Below, one piece after another: positions 1 through 64,000 of a stretch of DNA of 64,000 nucleotides. The stretch is from Oculina patagonica (lineage: Eukaryota). The stretch lies in NCBI RefSeq assembly GCF_052425735.1, contig NC_135763.1, positions 10,788,001 through 10,852,000 on the forward strand, given 5' to 3'. The first letter of the stretch is position 1. Every line of letters begins with the position of its first letter. The notes under the pieces were generated by a model. That model was not told where the DNA came from. It did not search any database and saw only the letters and a program-made list of their open reading frames with translations. Both the position numbers and the translations under genes were made by a program.

Positions 1-1900
1 TTTGATTAATGGTGATAAGGAGAGGAAATCGACCAAGCTCAGCTCTACATGCAACATTAGAAGCCTTATTACTGACTTCAAGATAGCGTTTACAAAACTG
101 TAGATGTTTTCTTTCAATTTGTGAACCATCCCAGGCCTTAAAATCAGATTTTACATAACCACCCCAAATTTCACTATTATAGAGCAGAATTGGAGATATC
201 ATTGCACCAAAGATTTTACAGGCAAGACTGAGAAGGTTTCAATCTACTAAAATTTGTGTGTCGTCTCAAACTAAAAAGTGCATGAAGTCCTTTCTCTTTT
301 AGGTGATCAAGTGAGATTTTAAAATTTCCTGTAGAAAATATTTTGGTTCCTAAATAAGTGTTATCTTGTACAACATCAATTGTTTGATTTCCTATGTAAA
401 ATACATGTTCAGTACATTTTTTCGCACGTTTTTGAAAAACCATTATCTTGGTTTTTTTGGGATTTACGCTCAACATCCACGTGTTGCAGTATGTGTCTAA
501 TGTGTTAAGACAGTTTTGCAAACCTGTTTTGGAACGTGATAAAACAATTAAATCGTCGGCATATAGTAGAGCGTTTAATTTTGTACCGTTTGGTAGGACA
601 AAAGGATCAGACAGAATATTTTCAAATGAGAACGGTAAATCGTTAATATAAAGGTTGAAAAGTAGTGGACTTAAAACGCAACCTTGTCGTACACCTCTCA
701 TATATTGAAAGGGTCGTGTCTGATACTGATCAATTTTTATCGAACAAGAAGACTTAGAATAAAGGCTTTTAATTAAATTGTAGAAGGATCCCCCTAAATT
801 AATTTGCAATAACTTACTTAAAAGCCCATTATGCCAGACTGAGTCGAAAGCTTTTCTAAAATCGACAAAGCAGGCATAAATTTTGCCATTGTGATTATGG
901 ACGTACTTGTCTATCAAAGTTCGGAGTGTGAAAACATGGTCTGCTGTTCGATTGTTAGGCATGAAGCCGATCTGTGACTTGTGTAATATATGATTGGTGT
1001 TGAAATACTCGAGAAGCCTTTGATTTAAAATAGAACAAAACAGTTTACCCAGACAACTCGAAACGCAGATACCACGGTAATTTGACTGATCACTTCTTCC
1101 ACCCGATTTATAAATTGGCGTTATGAAACCACCACACCATGTTTGAGGCATGGAACCTGAATTTAGAACTCCATTGAAAAGTTTGTAATATACGGGCATA
1201 AGGTCGTTGATACTTGCTTTAATCATTTCATTTTTAATTTTATCTGAATAAGAAGATTTGTTGTTCTTTAACTTTTTGGCAGCTTTTCGTATTTCAATTT
1301 CGGTAATCAAGTGATCTAATGGCCGAAATTGTTTTTTCCGGACTTCTTCTTCTTGAAGTTCGTTACATATTTTCTCTTGAATGGGATTAAGTCGATCATT
1401 GGAGTGAAGAGATTCAAAATATCGCAGCCAATTTTCTTCTGACACTAAAGGAGTATCTTCTTTTTTAATAGTGTCATCCATTGATTTTAAACATTTCCAA
1501 AAGTTAGCCGCATCTGAATTGTTAACAGCTTCCTCCAAGTTATGAAGCTTGCTATTGCAATAGTCGTTCTTTTTAGATTTAAGTACGTAAACTTTTGTAT
1601 TGCATTAGAACGACGTGGTAATTTTCACGTAAAATAGAGTTCAGGGGGTCTCTGTGTTTTTGGTTTGCCAATTTCCTCAATTCATGTCTTTTTAATCTAC
1701 ATTCCCGATCAAACCATTTTTTGTTTGACGATGACTGGATACGCTTACGCTGTTTTGTGGTTTTAATCTTTAAACATTGTCTTGCAGTTGTGTTAAAAAT
1801 ATTTTCTACTTTATCAAGGGAAGTGTTAACATCGTTAATATGTGCTCTTTCGTCTATGTAATCTTGTATGAGAGTTTGGATAACTGGAGAGCGTAAAGGT
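1..1900 (-). mobile_element. Decayed non-LTR retrotransposon (LINE) ORF2, reverse transcriptase region; frameshifted, runs off the left edge
   Basis: ORF 216-1538 has RT motifs (YRGICVSSCLGKLF, FVDFRKAFDSV, GVRQGCVLSPLLF, LLYADDL). Coding-like sequence continues in other frames on both sides (WFDREC upstream; NVACRAELGRFPL downstream). Clade not resolved. Confidence 0.9.
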
Positions 1901-1968
1901 TAACTTAACGAGGAGACTACGACCGGAAGGTGTGCATATTTCAGGCTGGAGATGTATTACAGTGCGGC

Positions 1969-3015
1969 TACTGTAACCGGGGTCACCCAGAAAAAGTTAG
2001 CTTCAGCCAATGAAATGTCGAGTACAGAACAAAGAAATTTCAACTTCTTCGTTCGCCACGAAAACAGATCGATACAAACTTTGGCTGTATGGCGGCGCTA
2101 AATTTTCAATTAATTAATTTCAATTGCATCCGTTTTGAACTTAAGTGGTTGTGACAGCAACATTTGGAAGTGGCGATGCCAACATTTTTTTGTCGTTTGA
2201 GAAAATAAAAATAAAATTTCAATTTGTTCACTCGTGAAGCTTATGTTTTTGCGTGTTTATTCAAGCTAGCTGAATTGCCGAAACTTTCGGATGTATACGG
2301 CCGATACGCTTTCGGTGGAACTCAACGATCGGACATCGCAGAAAACTAAATTTATCACGCTGGTAATGTGCTTCGTTGTTTGCAAATACGCCACGCACTT
2401 TGCCTAACCTATGACCGTCGCTTTCACTGGTACGTTATACAGCGCAGAATGTCTTCCTTCGCTAGGATCACGTGTATTTATTTTCCAAATGGTACAGCTA
2501 CCAAAACTTCAGTTGATGCCGTAGAGAAAACTTGAAATTGTTACGAGCGAACTCCTCCACGCACCATTGACACAGACGATACGGTCGTTTCTTTCCCCGT
2601 TTTTACACAGTTTCGAACTTCTATTACATAAACATCGCTAATATTTACCTTCCAAATGTTGCTGTCACAACCACTCAAGTTCAAAACGGATGCAATTGAA
2701 ATTAATTGAATATTCAGCGCCGCCATACAGCCAAAGTTTGTATCGATCTGTTTTGAAGGATGGGCCGATACTCGATACCAAATATTCGATACACCGATAA
2801 TTTGACAATTTTGAAAAGTATCGATACTTTCGAAAAATATCGCACTTTCGATACGTTTTCGATACTGCACACGTGACCTGTGGCGAACGAAGAAGTTGAA
2901 ATTTCTTTGTTCTGTACTCGACATTTCATTGGCTGAAGCTAAAAATGTAGAAATCTTTTGTTTCAGTTCTGCTTTGTGATTGGTTAACTTTGTCTGGGTG
3001 ACCCCAGTTACTGTA
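1969..3015. mobile_element. Foldback/MITE-like element with long imperfect inverted arms
   Basis: 1969-2170 (actgtaaccggggtcacccaga...agcttcagccaatgaaatgtcgag...catttggaag) is the reverse complement of blocks at 2649-2752, 2880-2940 and 2985-3015; the left arm has internal deletions. Confidence 0.7.
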
Positions 3016-3134
3016 AAGGGTAGGAATTTCATGGAAAATATCGACGGCAAACTGATCCTGACGGCTAAAGGGGTCAAAAATAAAAAAAGTGGATAAAAAG
3101 AAAAAAAAAAAAAAATATAAAAAAAATTTTAAAA

Positions 3135-3290
3135 NNNNNNNNNNNNNNNNNNNNNNNNNNNNNNNNNNNNNNNNNNNNNNNNNNNNNNNNNNNNNNNNNN
3201 NNNNNNNNNNNNNNNNNNNNNNNNNNNNNNNNNNNNNNNNNNNNNNNNNNNNNNNNNNNNNNNNNNNNNNNNNNNNNNNNNNNNNNNNNN
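3135..3290. other. Assembly gap (N run)
   Basis: 156 N bases flanked by low-quality A/T-rich sequence. Confidence 1.
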
Positions 3291-4437
3291 ATTTTTTTAG
3301 GAATTTCATGGGCTGGAGTATGGAAAGGGTAGGGAAAACTGTCTTTTAGGTATTTATAAAAGGGTCTTTCAAATACTGTGAACAGACCTACGGAACACTT
3401 GATCCATCCACAGTATTCTGGTTTTTCACACACACTGAAAGGTTTAGAAAATAGATGTTGTTTCCTCACTGTAGGTATCCCGATGGGAGAAGAGTTCAGG
3501 ATCTGCGATCAGGAGAATTTTTTCATCATCATCATCATCATTTATTTGCCTCTTTAGATTCGCCTCTTTTTGGTTATAAAAAGCGCGCAAAAAATGGCCC
3601 GACCGAAGTTTATCATTAATAGCCCTTCGGTCAGTCAATAAAACGTGCCACAGTCTGTATTATTCATTTTCCGTTCTCTGATATGATTTTGTCGATGTTC
3701 CTTGTTAACTGAGGTAAATTCTGCATTGGGAAACAGTGTCCCATGGCCGACTTGAGCTTATTCCGGTTTCCGTAGCATTTCAATTATTGTAGTATTTTAA
3801 TAATGGCTGGTGCCCATTTATACACCTGGGAGGAGACAGGCACTGTGAAGATAAAGGACATAAAGTGGCCATGCAAGAACACCCTTGAGTGCAACAATGT
3901 TCGCGTTGAAATACACCTTGCGGACACTCCACTATTACGCACACTCGACTCGCTATTACGGACAAGATCCAGTTCCCCAGCAAAAGCTATACTATGAGGT
4001 TTGACTGGAAATCACTCCCGCTATTACGGAGTCTTGTTATAATACGGGCACTAAACGACGACCCGAGCCTGTGCGCTGTAACGATAGTTGACTGACTTGA
4101 CTGTACATATTTAATACACATGGGAGCGTTTTGCACGCATCCAAATAGAAATGTACAGAACCAGTACGGAACGAAAATCGACTGTGAGCAGTTTTTCTTT
4201 TGATTTAAAATCCAAAAAAACGGTACGGAACGGAACTAGTGAGACTAGCCTCGGACGCAGAGGTTATTTTGTTCGTCACGCAATCGTTGGGGAGAAAGGT
4301 TGCGTGACGAGCCAGAAAGGACAGCGGTTTTGTACAAAGTATGTCATGCAATACCATTTCTTTGTCGTGGGCGGCCATCAGCTCTTCCTTAGCTTCTGTC
4401 GCTGTTCTGTAGATTGGAATCAATCCACACTGCATCC

Positions 4438-55100: not shown

Positions 55101-55805
55101 GACATCAGACATTTGTTTGGGTTAGAATGAACTTGGCTGCAACCCAAATGCCTCTTTTGCATAGCTTTATCTCAGTTGCTTCATTTTCATATCTTAGCAC
55201 ATTGGTATTGTCATGAATCTGTAAGCAAACGCCTCGTTTACATGTCTCTAACTCAATGCCATGTTAGCTTTTCTTTATGCAAGGGAACGACTGTGACCTT
55301 AACTGTAAGATGCGTTTCTGTGCCTCCTTAACAAACCTTACGAAGGGTGTTTGACCCAGTTTCAATATCGATTCTCTACTCATCTTGGTGTAAGTCAACA
55401 GTAAAACTAATATTTGTTATGATTGGTTACTTTCAGCTTCAGGAAAAGGCTTTTGAATTTGGCAAGAATATCGCCTATGCTCATCAGTTGAAGGAAGACC
55501 TTCAGTCTCTACATGAACAAAAATCTACCACCATTCTCCATAGTGCGCCCGTGATTCTCTCCAGCAGCCAAACTGAGGTGAAAAAACTGCTAAATGAAAT
55601 CTTTTCAGAAGAAAACACAGAGAAACTGGATCAGCTATACCAGGAACTGTCAGGTATGGTTATCCAAGAAGAAACAGTGGCACAGATAAAAAAACTGAGT
55701 TCATTTTATGGAAAAACAGCTTTGGAAACACTGTGTGTCTTTCCAGAGTCTGACGCCAAGAAAGCCCTAGTAAACATTGCCAACTCGTGTACTTATCAAG
55801 GGTAG
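49109..55805 (+). CDS. PDSS2: All-trans-polyprenyl diphosphate synthase subunit 2 (decaprenyl-PP synthase non-catalytic subunit), 3 exons, 406 aa
   Basis: Exons 49109-49619, 54116-54456, 55437-55805 (1221 nt). Motifs AEKIVGYPTSFLNLRYLLSDE, QTRGLLVLLISKA, QRQLADITETIHTANLVHTGIVN (DDxxD absent, as in PDSS2/DLP1), FGNKMAVLSGDFLLANAC. The Arg/Ser-rich N-terminus fits a mitochondrial transit peptide. Confidence 0.93.
50935..51330 (+). mobile_element. Penelope 3' fragment (GIY-YIG C-terminus plus degenerate hammerhead) in PDSS2 intron 1
   Basis: SAIKHHAEISHDIH..ILET..KRLFLESLHS..LNER, then CTCTGAAGA-AGACCGC-agaag-GCGATC-aAAA-TTTAGAG at 51224-51262. Confidence 0.8.
51618..52008. mobile_element. MITE (ATAGACC..ATGCAAA termini)
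   Basis: ATAGACCCAATGCAAATATGG is mirrored by CCATTTTTGCATAAGGTCTAT. Confidence 0.6.
52334..52616. mobile_element. Well-preserved MITE of the AGAGC(A/G)GTTTTCA family
   Basis: AGAGCGGTTTTCACTTGAGTGTCG...CGACACTCAATTGAAAACTGCTCT; a decayed second copy follows at ~52727-52940. Confidence 0.9.
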
Positions 55806-56187: not shown

Positions 56188-58407
56188 TTAAGTCGTTCTG
56201 TTGGCGGTTCGTTTGTCGCTTCTCTTTTCGTCGTGAATAAGTCGTTTGTAAGGTGCCGGTAGTTGTTGACATCTGTTGATAGGCTTCTGTTCTAAGTTTG
56301 TGTACCAGCTTTCCAGAGTCAGTCGTTGAAAATAGTTAGTACTGTAGGTTAAGCATTCAGCAGAGTCCCAGTCGATTTTGTGTTTAGTAAGTCGGTGGTG
56401 TTCAGAAATGTGATTGTTGACATCACCATTTCTCGTCGCTCGTTTGTGTTCAGTCAGTCTCGTGGTCAAGTTTCTACCGGTCTCTCCGATGTAGGAGGCC
56501 TGGCAGTCGGAGCATTTGATCTTATAAATCGCTCCCTGTCTGTTGTTAGGTTCGTCCCTGTCTTTAACGTTGGTCAGTAAATGTCGTAACGTTGTTATAG
56601 GTTTGTGAGCTACACGGATATTGTAGGGTTGTAGGATCCGCGCAATAGTCTCAGAAGTGCCCTTGATGTAGGGTAAAGTCGCTGTAGTAACAGATGTCAG
56701 ATTTCTGTCAGTTTCAGTAGTTCTGTGAGTGTTGCGTCTAATAAAGTCAGTATTGTAGTTGTTCTTGTGGAAAACGCGGTCAAGGTATTTGTTTTCGTCA
56801 GATAAACTGTCTGGTGTGTCACAAACTAGTTGCGCTCGTCTCGTCAAAGTCTTGATAGTCGTAGCTTTGTGGGAAGTCGGGTTGTAGGATGTTTCGTCCA
56901 GTAATCTGTCGGTATGCGTCGGTTTTCTGTACACTGTAGTTCGTATTTTGTTGATGTCGCGGCTTACCAGACAGTCAAGAAAAGGAAGTTTTCCGTTTTC
57001 TTCGATCTCCCTGGTAAACTGAATGTCGGCGTTCTGTTCGTTTAGGTGTTTGTGAAAGTCGTCGATTTCGTCTTTGTGTACGGTGGTAAAAGTATCGTCA
57101 ACGTAGCGTAACCAGAGCGGTATCGTTTGTCGGCAAGTTGCAAGGGCGCGTTCCTCGATGTTTTGCATCACAATTTCTGCGACAACAACGGAAACCGGCG
57201 ACCCCATGGCTGTTCCGTGCAACTGCTTGTAGTGTTTTCCGTTGTACTGGAAGTAAGTCGATGTAAGGCAGAGGTTCAGTAAGTCCATAATGTCTTCAGT
57301 CGGTAGCGGTAATGTAACAGTAGATTGTTGAATAGCGGTCTCGGTGCACTGTAGAGCCAATTGAAGTGGAATACTGGTGAACAGTGATTTCACATCAAAA
57401 GACACAAGTTTGTAGTCGTCAGGTATCTGTACAGTCTTGATGGCGTCAATAAAGTTCTCAGTAGATTGTAGTTTACGTCTGGATTCGTCTGTAAGAGGTT
57501 GCAGTATAGTCGTCAGGTATTTAGACAGTTGGTACGTAGGGGACCCACAGAACGAGACTATGGGTCGCATCGGTATACCCGGCTTGTGCAGTTTCGGTAG
57601 TCCGTAAAGTTTCGGTGGTTGCGGTACTGAGCACCGCAGTCGGTAGTAACGTTGATTGTCAAAAGCGTCGGTCTTTTTAAGCGTAAGTAGTTTGTTGTTC
57701 AGTTTACGTTGTAGTGCAGGCGTCGGGTCACGTTTAAGTACTTCGTAGATTTGTTTGTCGTTAACAAGTGCGTCCATTTTGTCATAGTAATCAGTCTTGT
57801 CCATAACAACAGTAACGCGTCCTTTGTCGGCTGGTAGTATAACAATGTTGTCGTCGGTTTTCAGTCGTTTCAGTGCTTGTTGTTCGTCTTTAGTCAAGTT
57901 GCTGTTAGGTATGGAGGCTGACTGTATCGTGGAAGCAATTCTGCTTCTGATGTTATCCTTGGCTGGTTCCGATAAATCTCGCTGACGAGACATAACCGCC
58001 TCAACACTAGATACAATAGTCTCGGTCGGTATACGTTTAGGTGTCACTGAGTGTTTCAGTCCGTATGAGAGTACCTGCGTCTCAGTTTTGTCTAAGGGAC
58101 GGGAAGAAATATTCCTGACCCAGTTTTCGTCAGATTTGTGTCGCTTTTTGTCTTTGTTGTGTTGAAGTCGTGTCAGTTTTTGTTTGTGTTCAGTGCGAAC
58201 ACGGTCTGTCGTTTTGTTGGCACGTCTGTCGGCAATAGTCGTAATAGTGTCAAGTAAGTTAGTCGGTATCAGTTGTTTAAGTTTGTCAAGTTGTTGTTGT
58301 AGTTTGTTGTTGTAGTATTTGAGTCTTCTGTGACAGTCGTTTATCCGCGCTTTGACCAGTCGTCTGCAGGTGGATTTGACGATCTGGATGGCCTCTTGTG
58401 TGTTCAA
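56188..58407 (-). CDS. Penelope reverse transcriptase + GIY-YIG endonuclease (N-terminally truncated, otherwise open for 739 codons)
   Basis: PADKG, LYGLPKLHK, SFDVKSLFT, GTAMGSP, RYVDD, LPFLD, AIYKIKC..C..SYIGETGR..RLTEH. The listed start is TTG, not a true initiator. Confidence 0.95.
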   Translation of the reverse strand: MNTQEAIQIVKSTCRRLVKARINDCHRRLKYYNNKLQQQLDKLKQLIPTNLLDTITTIADRRANKTTDRVRTEHKQKLTRLQHNKDKKRHKSDENWVRNISSRPLDKTETQVLSYGLKHSVTPKRIPTETIVSSVEAVMSRQRDLSEPAKDNIRSRIASTIQSASIPNSNLTKDEQQALKRLKTDDNIVILPADKGRVTVVMDKTDYYDKMDALVNDKQIYEVLKRDPTPALQRKLNNKLLTLKKTDAFDNQRYYRLRCSVPQPPKLYGLPKLHKPGIPMRPIVSFCGSPTYQLSKYLTTILQPLTDESRRKLQSTENFIDAIKTVQIPDDYKLVSFDVKSLFTSIPLQLALQCTETAIQQSTVTLPLPTEDIMDLLNLCLTSTYFQYNGKHYKQLHGTAMGSPVSVVVAEIVMQNIEERALATCRQTIPLWLRYVDDTFTTVHKDEIDDFHKHLNEQNADIQFTREIEENGKLPFLDCLVSRDINKIRTTVYRKPTHTDRLLDETSYNPTSHKATTIKTLTRRAQLVCDTPDSLSDENKYLDRVFHKNNYNTDFIRRNTHRTTETDRNLTSVTTATLPYIKGTSETIARILQPYNIRVAHKPITTLRHLLTNVKDRDEPNNRQGAIYKIKCSDCQASYIGETGRNLTTRLTEHKRATRNGDVNNHISEHHRLTKHKIDWDSAECLTYSTNYFQRLTLESWYTNLEQKPINRCQQLPAPYKRLIHDEKRSDKRTANRTT

Positions 58408-60108
58408 CGGCGACTTAAGACGGGAGAGCCATAAATTTCAACCGCGGGCCCACATTAGCATAAATTCGAAAAATTTGAAAAAAATTCACAGCATAGCCCT
58501 AGGTAAACTATAACTATAAATATATATTTTACTTCGATTCGATGAATATTTTAGGCGTACGGAAGTGATCTTGATTTTGCATCTCTCGGAAGCGGTTTCA
58601 GGGGTCTGATACCGCACACTGCAAACACCTCAATTTCAAAATTAAAACGATCTCTTTCGAAACAACAAATACATCATCTAAAAGAATCGATAATTATACA
58701 CATTTTGAATGGTTATTTTCTAAGTTTGAATCAATATTAAATATTTGGGAGATTTTTAATTCTTTACATCATTTTGAGACATTTCACGCAAGGCAAAATT
58801 GACAAAATTCAGCGCCTAAAATCATTGCCTGGTACATAAGCTAAGGTATAAAAACGTATACCACGTGAAAGAGCATTGTTTCTTCTTTGAAAATCCGTTT
58901 TCAAAACCACGGGCTACTAAAAAGACGATTTTTAACGGCCCGAAATGCAAGTAGTACTTTCGTGAAATTTGAGCTTCGCCGTAACGGCTTCGCGATGCTT
59001 GAAACTCACAAAGAATAACAAATAAACATATTTAAACAATACAGTTTTAATAATACTTGTCAACAGGTACCAGAACATACTCGCGAGACTATTTGGCGTG
59101 GTGTTGTATCATTTCTAAGAAATAAGAAACCATTTTAGCCGTTTTATTTGACCTCGAGTTCCAAAGTAACAGAAAGCAAACACAGGTCACGTAGCGTTTG
59201 TTAAGGTCAAAGCACCCTTTATCAGATCAAATTGTAATCAATGAATTTCATTTGTAACACAGATAACAAGAGCTACAATCAAATAATGTTCATACCTTAT
59301 AATAAGTAGTCAAAGCACCCTGGAAACTTTAAAAAATCCAATCGAAGCCCATCGAAAACAACATCTATTCTTCGCTGGTTTGATTCAACTGTGCTTATCG
59401 TTAGCTTGCGTTACATAATGGATAGACCGCTGACAAGCTGTTATATTTTGCGGGCTTGATTCTACAGAAGGACGTTTATCCGTCCTTTACAGTCTATTAA
59501 ATATTTTATTATTGTTGTTAGTGACCCCTTTTACCCTAAATGTTTGTTAAGTAAACTAAAGCGTGACCTTAACTCGGGTGACTTTCAACAGATGCCACTT
59601 AGGAACGAACCTTTATTTTCTTAGGGGGGGGGGGGGGGAGGGGTGGACATTAGCCAAATAAATTGCTGCAGAGTAAAACCGGCTGAAATAATCGTGCAAG
59701 AAAGCCAAAAAATTAATTTCGTTAAATGAAAATGAAACATGTGAAAAATAAACATCTAGCTCAGCAAAAATTACCCCTCCCGTCTCCCATCTTCTCAAAA
59801 AATAATGGTTTTTAGCTCACTTATCTAAATACATCTCCTGTTGTGTCATTTGGTTTTACTATCTTTCTGTAATATTCATTGTTATTGGCTATTCCTTTAT
59901 TTGAAAATATATCCTTTACTCTACAACTTCAAGATGAACTAAATGGGTCAAGTTATTATTAAGCAATTTATCAATTAGTTTTTGCTATATTTATAGTAAA
60001 TATTGAGTTAAGTATGAAAAACGTTTTTTCGACAAAAGTAGCCCTCTGCAGGTATTGTGTAACCTTAAAGCAGCTCTCCAATCAGTTGCAATAGTCAACA
60101 TTTAAATC

Positions 60109-61853
60109 TTAAACCCTCGTGCAAGAACACGACCCAACAATATCTGAAATGAAACTAATGTAAGGCGCTTTTCGCTTTGATGATTGGGCCTCGATGTCCA
60201 TGTTGTAGAAATCGCAGATTGACCGCAGTTGTGCAACACTGAGTTTGGTCAGCTTGTTACTAGTATACAAGGAACATATCATATTAAGTGTGTCATACAC
60301 GATGGGATGAACCAGTTGGCACTGGTCTAGGATGGATGCACGAGCAGAGGTAAAGGCTTCTTCCTCTTGGGCCGCCAGAAGGTCGTTATCATCGGTTACA
60401 TGAGCTGACTGAGATGTCGCGTGTTTCAATTTTGCAGCGGTACGCGAGAAGTATCCCTGAATCTGCTGCGCAGTTAGGAACTCGTCAACCTGAAAGAGCC
60501 GCTGACCATTTTCCTTCCTTGCGTATCGCATGTCCCGAGATACTTTTTCAGGGTCGGATTTGTGGCCAGTCTCCTACCCGATCTGGAACTTAGCATCCAG
60601 GTACTGGCGCTGATTGTCGTTAAAACGGCTGGCCTTTTTTGAAACTTTTAGAGCCCAGCCTTGCTCTAGGGGGGCCTCTGGGCACTCTTCATGATCAGTT
60701 GTCGTCGGGACAGCTAGTGTTGGCTGAAGGGAACAACCCTCTTAAATCTTTTTAGCGTACGCCAATACTGCCTGGTCAAAAAGGGTGTGCTTCTCAGAAA
60801 CGAGTTTGCACTTTCCGAACAGCAAATGGCGCTCAAGGTTGTAGTACTTCTGATAGGTGCAGATGCACCCATTCACAGGACACGACAACAGCCCACTGCT
60901 TGCACCTTCCTCTTCTTCATCTCCGTCCTCGTCTTCTTCTTCATCCAAGTGTTCGATCATGGCTCGTTCGGCAGGTACGCGCCTTTCTTTAGAGCATGCC
61001 ACAAAGTCTCCTTTAGACACCTCAGCCTTACACACATCTGGTAACCTTACAGGAACTGAATAATGGACCAGAAAAAAATATTAGAAAAAAGTAAAAGAAT
61101 AACATAGTAATGTACAAATGAAACAAAATAGTAGGGAAGACTCTTCAAATTATTTGTTTATATATTTTATCTTATCTTATTTATTTTTTTATTTAATATT
61201 TTACTGGTAAGATGGGAGTTTCATCCAAATAAGAATAAGATGTTGAAAATAAAAAAAAGACAAGAAATCGGATTGCCCATCATTAAATAGTTTTTTCCGA
61301 TTTACTTTTTCCCTTGACTTTTTCTTAACACAGTAGTGAAAATATCAGAATAGAGGTATATAACTAATATAAGATATGCATGTATGTTGTTGTTGTAACT
61401 ATAACCTTGTAATTGAGACCATGGTATATTCTTTCCCTCTCCAATGTTGCATGCCTTCCATACTGTGACACAGTCCTCTTGGTAGAGGAAATTGTTTAAG
61501 CTGCTGATACCCTCCCAGCGGCCTGGAACCTCTTGCTGGGGCTTGTTGGTAGCATCGGTAACTAGGACGACCCGCACAGCACTCATGCCCCCGTGAGACA
61601 ACATGGCTTCTTTGAAGTCGCGCGCCGTTACCACGTCGTGGCCCTGGTTGATGTATCATCGCACATAAGCCTTGATGGAAGCGGCTTTCCTGTCACAAGG
61701 CCCTTTACCTCCCTGAGGGTCACTGAAGTCGACTCTTTTTACATCAATCCCCGTCGCCTCTCCCATCAGACGGCATGCTGACAGCATGGCTGCACTGTGA
61801 TAGCACCCAGCGTTATCTTGCCTTAGTGCTGCACTTGTAATTTCAGGATGCTT
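60109..61853 (-). pseudogene. C-terminal half of a DDE-type transposase with one intron and three in-frame stops
   Basis: Exon 61853-61406 (KHPEI..DNAGCYH..GKGPCD..KAYVR*YINQG), GT-AG intron 61405-61056, exon 61055-60109 (C2H2-like LSCPVNGC..LERHL; stops TAA and TAG; GWALK, QIQGYFSR). Confidence 0.85.
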
Positions 61854-62710
61854 GAGCCATGACCGAACACTTGGATGAAGAAGAAGACGAGGACGGAGAT
61901 GAAGAAGAGGAAGGTGCAAGCAGTGGGCTGTTGTCGTGTCCTGTGGATGGGTGCATCTGCACCTATCAAAAGTACTACAACCTTGAGCGCCATTTGCTGT
62001 TCGGAAAGTGCAAACTCGTTTCTGAGAAGCACACCCTTTTTGACCAGGCAGTATTGGCGTACGCTAAAAAGATTTAAGAGGGTTGTTCCCTTCAGCCAAC
62101 ACTAGCTGTCCCGACGACAACTGATCATGAAGAGTGCCCAGAGGCCCCCCTAGAGCAAGGCTGGGCTCTAAAAGTTTCAAAAAAGGCCAGCCGTTTTAAC
62201 GACAATCAGCGCCAGTACCTGGATGCTAAGTTCCAGATCGGGTAGGAGACTGGCCACAAATCCGACCCTGAAAAAGTATCTCGGGACATGCGATACGCAA
62301 GGAAGGAAAATGGTCAGCGGCTCTTTCAGGTTGACGAGTTCCTAACTGCGCAGCAGATTCAGGGATACTTCTCGCGTACCGCTGCAAAATTGAAACACGC
62401 GACATCTCAGTCAGCTCATGTAACCGATGATAACGACCTTCTGGCGGCCCAAGAGGAAGAAGCCTTTACCTCTGCTCGTGCATCCATCCTAGACCAGTGC
62501 CAACTGGTTCATCCCATCGTGTATGACACACTTAATATGATATGTTCCTTGTATACTAGTAACAAGCTGACCAAACTCAGTGTTGCACAACTGCGGTCAA
62601 TCTGCGATTTCTACAACATGGACATCGAGGCCCAATCATCAAAGCGAAAAGCGCCTTACATTAGTTTCATTTCAGATATTGTTGGGTCGTGTTCTTGCAC
62701 GAGGGTTTAA
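61854..62710 (+). pseudogene. Inverted duplicate of the transposase last-exon sequence
   Basis: Same frame and the same stops (TAA 62075-62077, TAG 62243-62245) as the minus-strand copy. Confidence 0.9.
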
Positions 62711-64000
62711 GATTTAAATGTTGACTATTGCAACTGATTGGAGAGCTGCTTTAAGGTTACACAATACCTGCAGAGGGCTACTTTTGTCGAAAAAACGTTT
62801 TTCATACTTAACTCAATATTTACTATAAATATAGCAAAAACTAATTGATAAATTGCTTAATAATAACTTGACCCATTTAGTTCATCTTGAAGTTGTAGAG
62901 TAAAGGATATATTTTCAAATAAAGGAATAGCCAATAACAATGAATATTACAGAAAGATAGTAAAACCAAATGACACAACAGGAGATGTATTTAGATAAGT
63001 GAGCTAAAAACCATTATTTTTTGAGAAGATGGGAGACGGGAGGGGTAATTTTTGCTGAGCTAGATGTTTATTTTTCACATGTTTCATTTTCATTTAACGA
63101 AATTAATTTTTTGGCTTTCTTGCACGATTATTTCAGCCGGTTTTACTCTGCAGCAATTTATTTGGCTAATGTCCACCCCCTCCCCCCCCCCCCCTAAGAA
63201 AATAAAGGTTCGTTCCTAAGTGGCATCTGTTGAAAGTCACCCGAGTTAAGGTCACGCTTTAGTTTACTTAACAAACATTTAGGGTAAAAGGGGTCACTAA
63301 CAACAATAATAAAATATTTAATAGACTGTAAAGGACGGATAAACGTCCTTCTGTAGAATCAAGCCCGCAAAATATAACAGCTTGTCAGCGGTCTATCCAT
63401 TATGTAACGCAAGCTAACGATAAGCACAGTTGAATCAAACCAGCGAAGAATAGATGTTGTTTTCGATGGGCTTCGATTGGATTTTTTAAAGTTTCCAGGG
63501 TGCTTTGACTACTTATTATAAGGTATGAACATTATTTGATTGTAGCTCTTGTTATCTGTGTTACAAATGAAATTCATTGATTACAATTTGATCTGATAAA
63601 GGGTGCTTTGACCTTAACAAACGCTACGTGACCTGTGTTTGCTTTCTGTTACTTTGGAACTCGAGGTCAAATAAAACGGCTAAAATGGTTTCTTATTTCT
63701 TAGAAATGATACAACACCACGCCAAATAGTCTCGCGAGTATGTTCTGGTACCTGTTGACAAGTATTATTAAAACTGTATTGTTTAAATATGTTTATTTGT
63801 TATTCTTTGTGAGTTTCAGGCATCGCGAAGCCGTTACGGCGAAGCTCAAATTTCACGAAAGTACTACTTGCATTTCGGGCCGTTAAAAATCGTCTTTTTA
63901 GTAGCCCGTGGTTTTGAAAACGGATTTTCAAAGAAGAAACAATGCTCTTTCACGTGGTATACGTTTTTATACCTTAGCTTATGTACCAGGCAGTGATTTT

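Follow-up and report, generated by a model that had tools for sequence, protein, structure and literature searches.

A young family of foldback-like, TTAA-inserting transposons in the coral Oculina patagonica and its likely origin from a larger DNA transposon

The locus and the architecture of the element

The sequence analysed here, referred to below as the window, is a 64,000-nucleotide stretch of the genome of the coral Oculina patagonica (NC_135763.1, positions 10,788,001 to 10,852,000; G000:C6:10788001-10852000). Near its right end there is a DNA element that consists mostly of two long inverted arms and that carries remnants of a transposase gene. The element spans window positions 58419-64399 (5,981 bp) when the DNA past the window end is included, and it splits the open reading frame (ORF) of a Penelope-like retroelement. 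An original prediction, made from the sequence letters, had described it as a giant hairpin resembling the maize Mu killer locus, formed when an inverted copy of a transposon's 3′ half took the place of its 5′ half. The features of the locus are as follows, in window coordinates.

56188-58418, minus strand: Penelope-like host ORF (reverse transcriptase plus GIY-YIG), split by the insertion and resuming past 64403
58415-58418: left TTAA target-site duplication, with its partner just past the window at 64400-64403; the empty site is found in a paralogous Penelope copy
58419-60965: left arm, a 2,547-bp terminal inverted repeat (TIR) with terminus GACGGGAGAGCC; the outer ~830 bp are the left-type TIR of the parent element itself
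60109-61055, minus strand: last transposase exon, with a C2H2-like motif, a GWALK block and a SAP-like tail; natural stop at 60109-60111
60966-61853: spacer of 888 bp, the unique loop of the hairpin, delimited by the repeat finder and by extended copies
61056-61405, minus strand: GT..AG intron of 350 nt, removed in frame in contigs from the public runs X15 and X16
61406-61853, minus strand: truncated catalytic exon, its 3′ 448 bp, cut at 61853; the first catalytic D is absent
61853-61854: rearrangement joint, GCT-T/GAGCC (the slash marks the joint), identical in all copies examined; the parent sequence diverges here
61854-64000: right arm, an inverted copy of 58419-60965 that extends past the window to 64399
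61854-62710, sense on the plus strand: mirrored exon part in the right arm, located by comparison of the arms

The two arms (58419-60965 and 61854-64399) are 2,547 nt each and differ by 8 mismatches. Two pairs reported by the repeat finder, 59625-60965/61854-63194 and 58818-59642/63176-64000, abut and form a single repeat. A global alignment of the portion within the window (58818-60965 against the reverse complement of 61854-64000) contains 6 mismatches, every one a transition, and a 1-nt length change within a G tract. These kinds of difference are those that had been predicted, although the earlier count of four transitions is too low. The termini read TTAA/GACGGGAGAGCC...GGCTCTCCCGTC/TTAA, and the right end that had been anticipated outside the window, ...CTCTCCCGTC/TTAA, is present exactly at 64399. 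Tandem-repeat and short-repeat scans of the arm revealed no subterminal repeat arrays.

Each arm carries 857 bp from the 3′ part of the last transposase exon, in good agreement with the earlier estimate of about 850 bp. This exon is interrupted by two premature stops, TAA at 60742-60744 and TAG at 60574-60576, whose mirror positions in the other arm are 62075-62077 and 62243-62245. The catalytic exon of the spacer, a 448-bp fragment that ends at 61853 as had been noted, contains a third stop, TGA at 61656-61658. Because the identical stops occur in both arms, the inversion must be later than the inactivation of the gene, which is the order of events that had been proposed. The gene of the hairpin is therefore truncated and carries three stops, such that no functional transposase can be produced from it and the element is non-autonomous.

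A mobile family with many near-identical copies

The genome searches score best candidates only, and thus all locus counts given here are lower bounds. There are 41 genomic matches to the first 982 bp of the element, and they are mostly found as inverted pairs ~5 kb apart. Eight full-length copies were recovered in addition to the copy in the window, all with the same layout of arms and spacer and with 99.1-99.8% identity. When a 600-bp probe centred on the joint 61853/61854 was used, it matched end to end at 15 loci and gave a partial match spanning the joint at a 16th, and its spacer half alone was matched at 4 loci. The joint sequence GCT-T/GAGCC is common to all eight of the aligned copies.

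TTAA is present on both sides of every copy examined, and the flanks are unrelated between copies. A precise empty site for the copy in the window is found in a Penelope paralogue (C5:9949432-9950466), where the match to the left flank stops at C5:9949950 and the match to the right flank begins at C5:9949947, so that the two overlap by the 4-bp TTAA only. TIRs and target-site duplications are thus found at many independent sites, as in a cut-and-paste transposon. There are also internal-deletion derivatives among the family copies, which are expected when cut-and-paste transposition is combined with gap repair. The shared joint, the individual TTAA duplications with distinct flanks, and the exact empty site establish that the whole 5,981-bp unit has transposed. 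The earlier suggestion that the hairpin could still be mobilised is therefore upheld by the TTAA-flanked copies, and its call for a count of genomic copies with the same junction yields at least 16. A single silencing locus, as in the Mu killer comparison, is not what is found; instead, there is a mobile multi-copy family.

The full copies differ pairwise by 0.15-0.57%. Only one position, element position 2538, separates the two arms across copies, with A in left arms and mostly G in right arms. Within a copy there are 6-13 differences from arm to arm, and between copies the average is 10-13. Since the two arms of one copy have diverged about as far as the copies have from one another, the arms must have been essentially identical when amplification began and have drifted independently since. 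As judged from these sequence differences, the pattern fits one duplication followed by a prompt burst.

Parent elements and the origin of the hairpin

There are only four loci that match the 5′ half of the parent gene (C4:34.74 Mb, C8:12.30 Mb, C4:19.8 Mb and C3:23.0 Mb). These parent-type copies are 9.6-13.5 kb in length and are 94-98% identical to the hairpin family in the sequence that they share. All four are broken by stops, frameshifts or deletions. One of them, L048 (C4:34739850-34749430, ~9.6 kb), is collinear with element positions 1-3434, which corresponds to window position 61852, and diverges exactly at the joint. Past the joint it continues into the remainder of the gene on the minus strand, where the upstream exons are found. 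This is the arrangement expected if the 5′ half was replaced by an inverted 3′ half, and the parent-type copies thereby bear out that part of the original prediction. L048 has glutamine codons at both of the arm-stop positions, yet it carries three other stops.

The parent gene has five exons and encodes ~1,140 amino acids, as determined by tblastn with full-length relatives of 878-1,183 amino acids. The hairpin retains the last exon (61055-60109), the 350-nt intron (61405-61056) and, from the catalytic exon, its 3′ 448 bp (61853-61406). All sequence upstream of the joint has been replaced by the reverse complement of element positions 1-2547. At the joint, the parent reads ...GATGCTC/TGCC and the source of the arm reads ...GAAC/GAGCC, so that at most one C is shared, and this position is now a T in all copies. 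The TIRs of the parent are ~830 bp long and 92% complementary. Left-type and right-type ends form two classes that are ~10% apart across the family, and the hairpin has two left-type ends.

These features suggest that a single inverted duplication took place in a copy, by then inactive, of an autonomous element of 9.6-13.5 kb. The sequence upstream of a point in the catalytic exon would have been swapped for an inverted copy of the 3′ 2,547 bp of the element, which would have created two identical left-type ends. The likely cause was a fold-back or template-switch error in break repair or replication; 1 nt of microhomology at most is visible at the joint. Nested self-insertion was set aside as an unlikely origin, given that no TTAA lies at the joint. 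Transposase supplied in trans from some source would then have moved the 5,981-bp unit to the 16 or more sites at which it is now found. The transposase responsible for the burst may have disappeared through excision, may be missing from the sampled individual or may since have decayed. The next-nearest transposase families in the genome share 55-63% protein identity.

The transposase and its superfamily

There are 3,517 relatives of the catalytic exon at E<=0.001, counted as cluster representatives. In an alignment, D71 (in DWAMKF), D154 (in SDNAGCYH) and D195 are nearly invariant, and position 186 is E or D. The conserved blocks include SDNAGCYH and, ~30 residues further on, DFSEPQxGKxxCD. 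An AlphaFold model of the catalytic exon has a predicted local distance difference test (pLDDT) score of 91, and its best Foldseek matches are retroviral integrase structures, both of the catalytic core and of two domains (E ~1e-5, probability 0.98-1.00). The model predicts that the catalytic exon folds as an integrase-like RNase H core.

Pfam searches gave no match for any exon or for 72 relatives. This includes the piggyBac domain DDE_Tnp_1_7, and piggyBac was accordingly rejected even though the TTAA duplication agrees with it. Kolobok elements have TTAA duplications and 5′-RR...YY-3′ termini (PMC9587614), and the TTAA/GA...TC/TTAA ends of the coral element conform to both (PMC9587614). However, Kolobok enzymes are defined by a C/DxxH motif and a zinc finger (PMC9587614), for which the coral protein has no room, as ~32-41 residues separate its second acidic residue from the third. 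Moreover, the conserved words of the coral family are absent from published Kolobok alignments (PMC9587614). Kolobok membership is thus not supported, the likeness lying in the TTAA and GA...TC ends and the difference in the integrase-like core of the coral transposase.

Sola elements have a 4-bp target-site duplication, a DDD transposase, a length of 2-15 kb and TIRs of up to 1,124 bp (PMC10741241). The parents resemble this description in their 4-bp duplication, long TIRs and large size. They also resemble it in the likely D-D-D/E triad with short spacing (D71, D154, and E/D186 or D195). Sola is therefore a plausible candidate superfamily, matched by description only.

The transposase superfamily is highly prolific in this genome: matches to the catalytic exon at E<=1e-20 occur at no fewer than 128 loci, often within stop-free frames of 600-1,132 amino acids.

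Transcription across the joint

There are 20 public runs, from ten studies and with several coral organism labels, in which 56-91% of the 31-mers of the element are present. The evidence for expression comes from assembled contigs. In both X15 and X16, a contig skips positions 3138-3487 of the extended locus L031 (window 61056-61405; junction 3137>3488). The skipped 350 nt start with CT and end with AC on the plus strand, which corresponds to GT..AG on the minus strand, and the junction joins ...SQLQ to VPVRLPDV... in frame. An unspliced contig is present as well. Judged from these sequence features, the skip is a spliced RNA in the transposase sense.

A contig of the adjoining exon runs from the splice donor past the joint, by 17 nt in X15 and by 9 nt in X16, with no mismatch. 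The X15 and X16 exon contigs bear hairpin-type bases at the sites that distinguish the hairpin from its parents. Contigs from X19 bear parent-type bases, and a contig from X8 passes from position 3934 into parent sequence. Since contigs with hairpin-type bases cross the joint, hairpin copies appear to be transcribed from within or beyond the right arm. Transcription in the transposase sense would enter from the right arm, cross the joint and be spliced. An RNA that continued into the left arm would contain both antisense and sense versions of the last exon and 3′ region, and by folding back on itself it could form a stem of as much as 2.5 kb. The formation of hairpin RNA by the family is plausible because transcripts cross the joint. 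The read-through from Penelope or PDSS2 that had been proposed for this locus is not supported.

Assessment of the origin and of alternative explanations

We consider it very likely that the element is a copy of a young, multi-copy family of non-autonomous, TTAA-inserting DNA transposons of the long-TIR or foldback-like kind, and this judgement extends to the whole explanation, including origin and mobilisation. Several points weigh against this explanation. No intact transposase source was found in the assembly by the best-candidate searches, and the four parents, all broken, are no more than 94-98% identical to the hairpin. The proposed mechanism of duplication rests on one joint. The contigs carry neither strand nor level, and the RNA label of X15 and X16 is a guess that is based mainly on the splice. 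In addition, reads from an arm fit both arms, and there is no single molecule with both arms among the contigs.

One possibility, which would add to the transposon explanation and not replace it, is that the element acts as a silencer in the manner of Mu killer. Double-stranded RNA (dsRNA) from the hairpin would give rise to small RNAs that silence the parents in trans. The inverted 857-bp exon pieces, placed within duplicated TIRs, are the arrangement that such a silencer would have, and the spliced, joint-crossing contigs (from runs whose RNA status was guessed) suggest that it is transcribed. There are also 16 hairpins against four parents, all of which were found to be dead. However, ordinary decay or competition by non-autonomous copies would account for dead parents just as well. 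Furthermore, amplification to 16 copies after the hairpin arose indicates that transposase was still supplied, and therefore that transposition was not shut down at once. A weak hint of dsRNA editing is that 8 of 13 differences in the X15 contig are A>G or T>C, although common polymorphism could equally have produced them. The eight genomic copies show 87 changes, of which 61 are transitions and only 5 are CpG transitions, and the observed/expected ratio for CpG is 0.89. CpG transitions are thus not in excess and CpG is not depleted, so that no mark of long-term germline methylation is seen. We regard a silencing role of this kind as unlikely, and the analogy to Mu killer is best read as a structural one.

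A more elaborate version, which we consider somewhat more doubtful still, is a self-propagating silencer. In such a system the hairpin would multiply via the transposase of its family, and each transcribed copy would make dsRNA against that same transposase. The promoter could reside in the duplicated ends or in host genes, and more activity of the family would create more silencer loci. If true, this would account for the presence of 16 hairpins beside four dead parents, and it would constitute a mobile animal counterpart of the maize Mu killer.

Returning to the inverted duplication, its polarity might be questioned, as the unusually long TIRs of the parents (~830 bp) could be taken to mean that the long-TIR form is ancestral and that the parent copies were derived from it. 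This is highly improbable, since part of the last exon, with stops in it, is present twice in the arms, and the exon in the spacer is cut in the middle of a domain and lacks the first catalytic D. Each exon of the parent gene, in contrast, has its counterpart in full-length relatives from other animals, and the parents carry left-type and right-type TIRs that are ~10% apart where the hairpin has two left-type ends. Finally, an artefact in which the assembler or the amplification of a library created a chimeric or fold-back join can be dismissed for practical purposes, although palindromic joins are generally known both from long-read assemblies and from libraries that were amplified. The same joint is found at 16 loci that differ in their flanks and have TTAA duplications, and it is also present in contigs of independent public runs, which come from other studies and carry other organism labels.

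Relation to known systems and significance

Drosophila FB and Galileo, together with Caenorhabditis elegans Tc4 and Tc7, are foldback or long-TIR non-autonomous elements that consist mostly of two long inverted arms and are mobilised in trans. The coral element is likewise non-autonomous and composed mostly of two long inverted arms. However, its origin can be traced to a single joint in a known parent, and its arms are without tandem subrepeats and include transposase coding sequence. A long-TIR, foldback-like non-autonomous transposon is thus a known kind of element, and it is the single-step origin that is unusually legible here.

In maize, Mu killer occupies one locus, at which the 5′ part of mudrA is duplicated. 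Its transcription is by read-through from a gene next to it, and genetic evidence has shown that it silences MuDR (PMC3440606). The likeness consists of an inverted duplication of transposase sequence plus TIR and the prediction of a kilobase-scale hairpin RNA. The coral element differs in that it duplicates the 3′ part of its gene, has transposed to at least 16 sites and has at most a putative role in silencing.

Alternative transposition of Ac/Ds makes inverted duplications that trigger silencing by small interfering RNAs (bioRxiv 10.1101/2020.01.07.897926). Both cases feature an inverted transposon duplication as a by-product of transposon activity that may start silencing. Chromosomal rearrangements are involved in the Ac/Ds case, whereas in the coral there is a compact unit that itself transposes.

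The family provides a cleanly dated example of how a single step can turn an ordinary transposon into a foldback-like element with kilobase-long TIRs that stays mobile. There are 16 near-identical loci in a cnidarian, each of which is expected to give a hairpin RNA against its own transposase. This makes it possible to ask whether non-autonomous derivatives double as triggers of RNA interference in an early-branching animal. For annotation, the family should be masked, as its arms hold ORFs of 140 amino acids that gene callers could pick up.

Variant copies, host element and flanking sequence

One hairpin copy (L044/L045, C9:17532206-17553977) is split at element position ~1428 by an insertion of ~15 kb. 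Another copy (C6:4990241-4996100) is a mosaic, in which the joint-side arm is only 89% identical to the family over its outer ~980 bp, where it is also ~93 bp shorter. Identity rises to 99-100% in the middle and inner portions of this arm and at the joint, and it is 96% in the other arm. The copy may have arisen by recombination, or it may be a relic left by the founding event. It was considered as an intermediate that keeps the right-type TIR of the parent in its joint-side arm, but it is not among the right-type TIR matches. Within an intron of the parent L048 (L048:4717-4874) lies a stretch of ~150 bp that has at least 35 dispersed matches in the genome, with identities of 83-85%. This is probably a small high-copy element, either a miniature inverted-repeat transposable element or a short interspersed nuclear element.

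Elsewhere in the window, positions 3135-3290 are a run of 156 N, which represents an assembly gap or a masked stretch. The original prediction had named PDSS2 as a neighbouring gene, but the 152-amino-acid ORF at 55347-55805 on the plus strand has no Pfam or PDB match, and this label is unconfirmed.

The proposed insertion into a Penelope ORF is confirmed by matches of the host ORF to RVT_1 (E 2.8e-07, above the cut-off) and to GIY-YIG (E 7e-4, just under the cut-off). The Penelope frame is uninterrupted across the empty site (...PAGLKLKSPLNTQEA...). The right flank of the insertion (L031:6686-7000, ~64604-64918) matches window positions 56834-57148 on the opposite strand with 100% identity, so that the Penelope-like host holds an inverted partial copy of itself. 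Paired plus and minus matches are likewise found in many other genomic Penelope copies, and a head-to-head arrangement is typical of Penelope-like retroelements.

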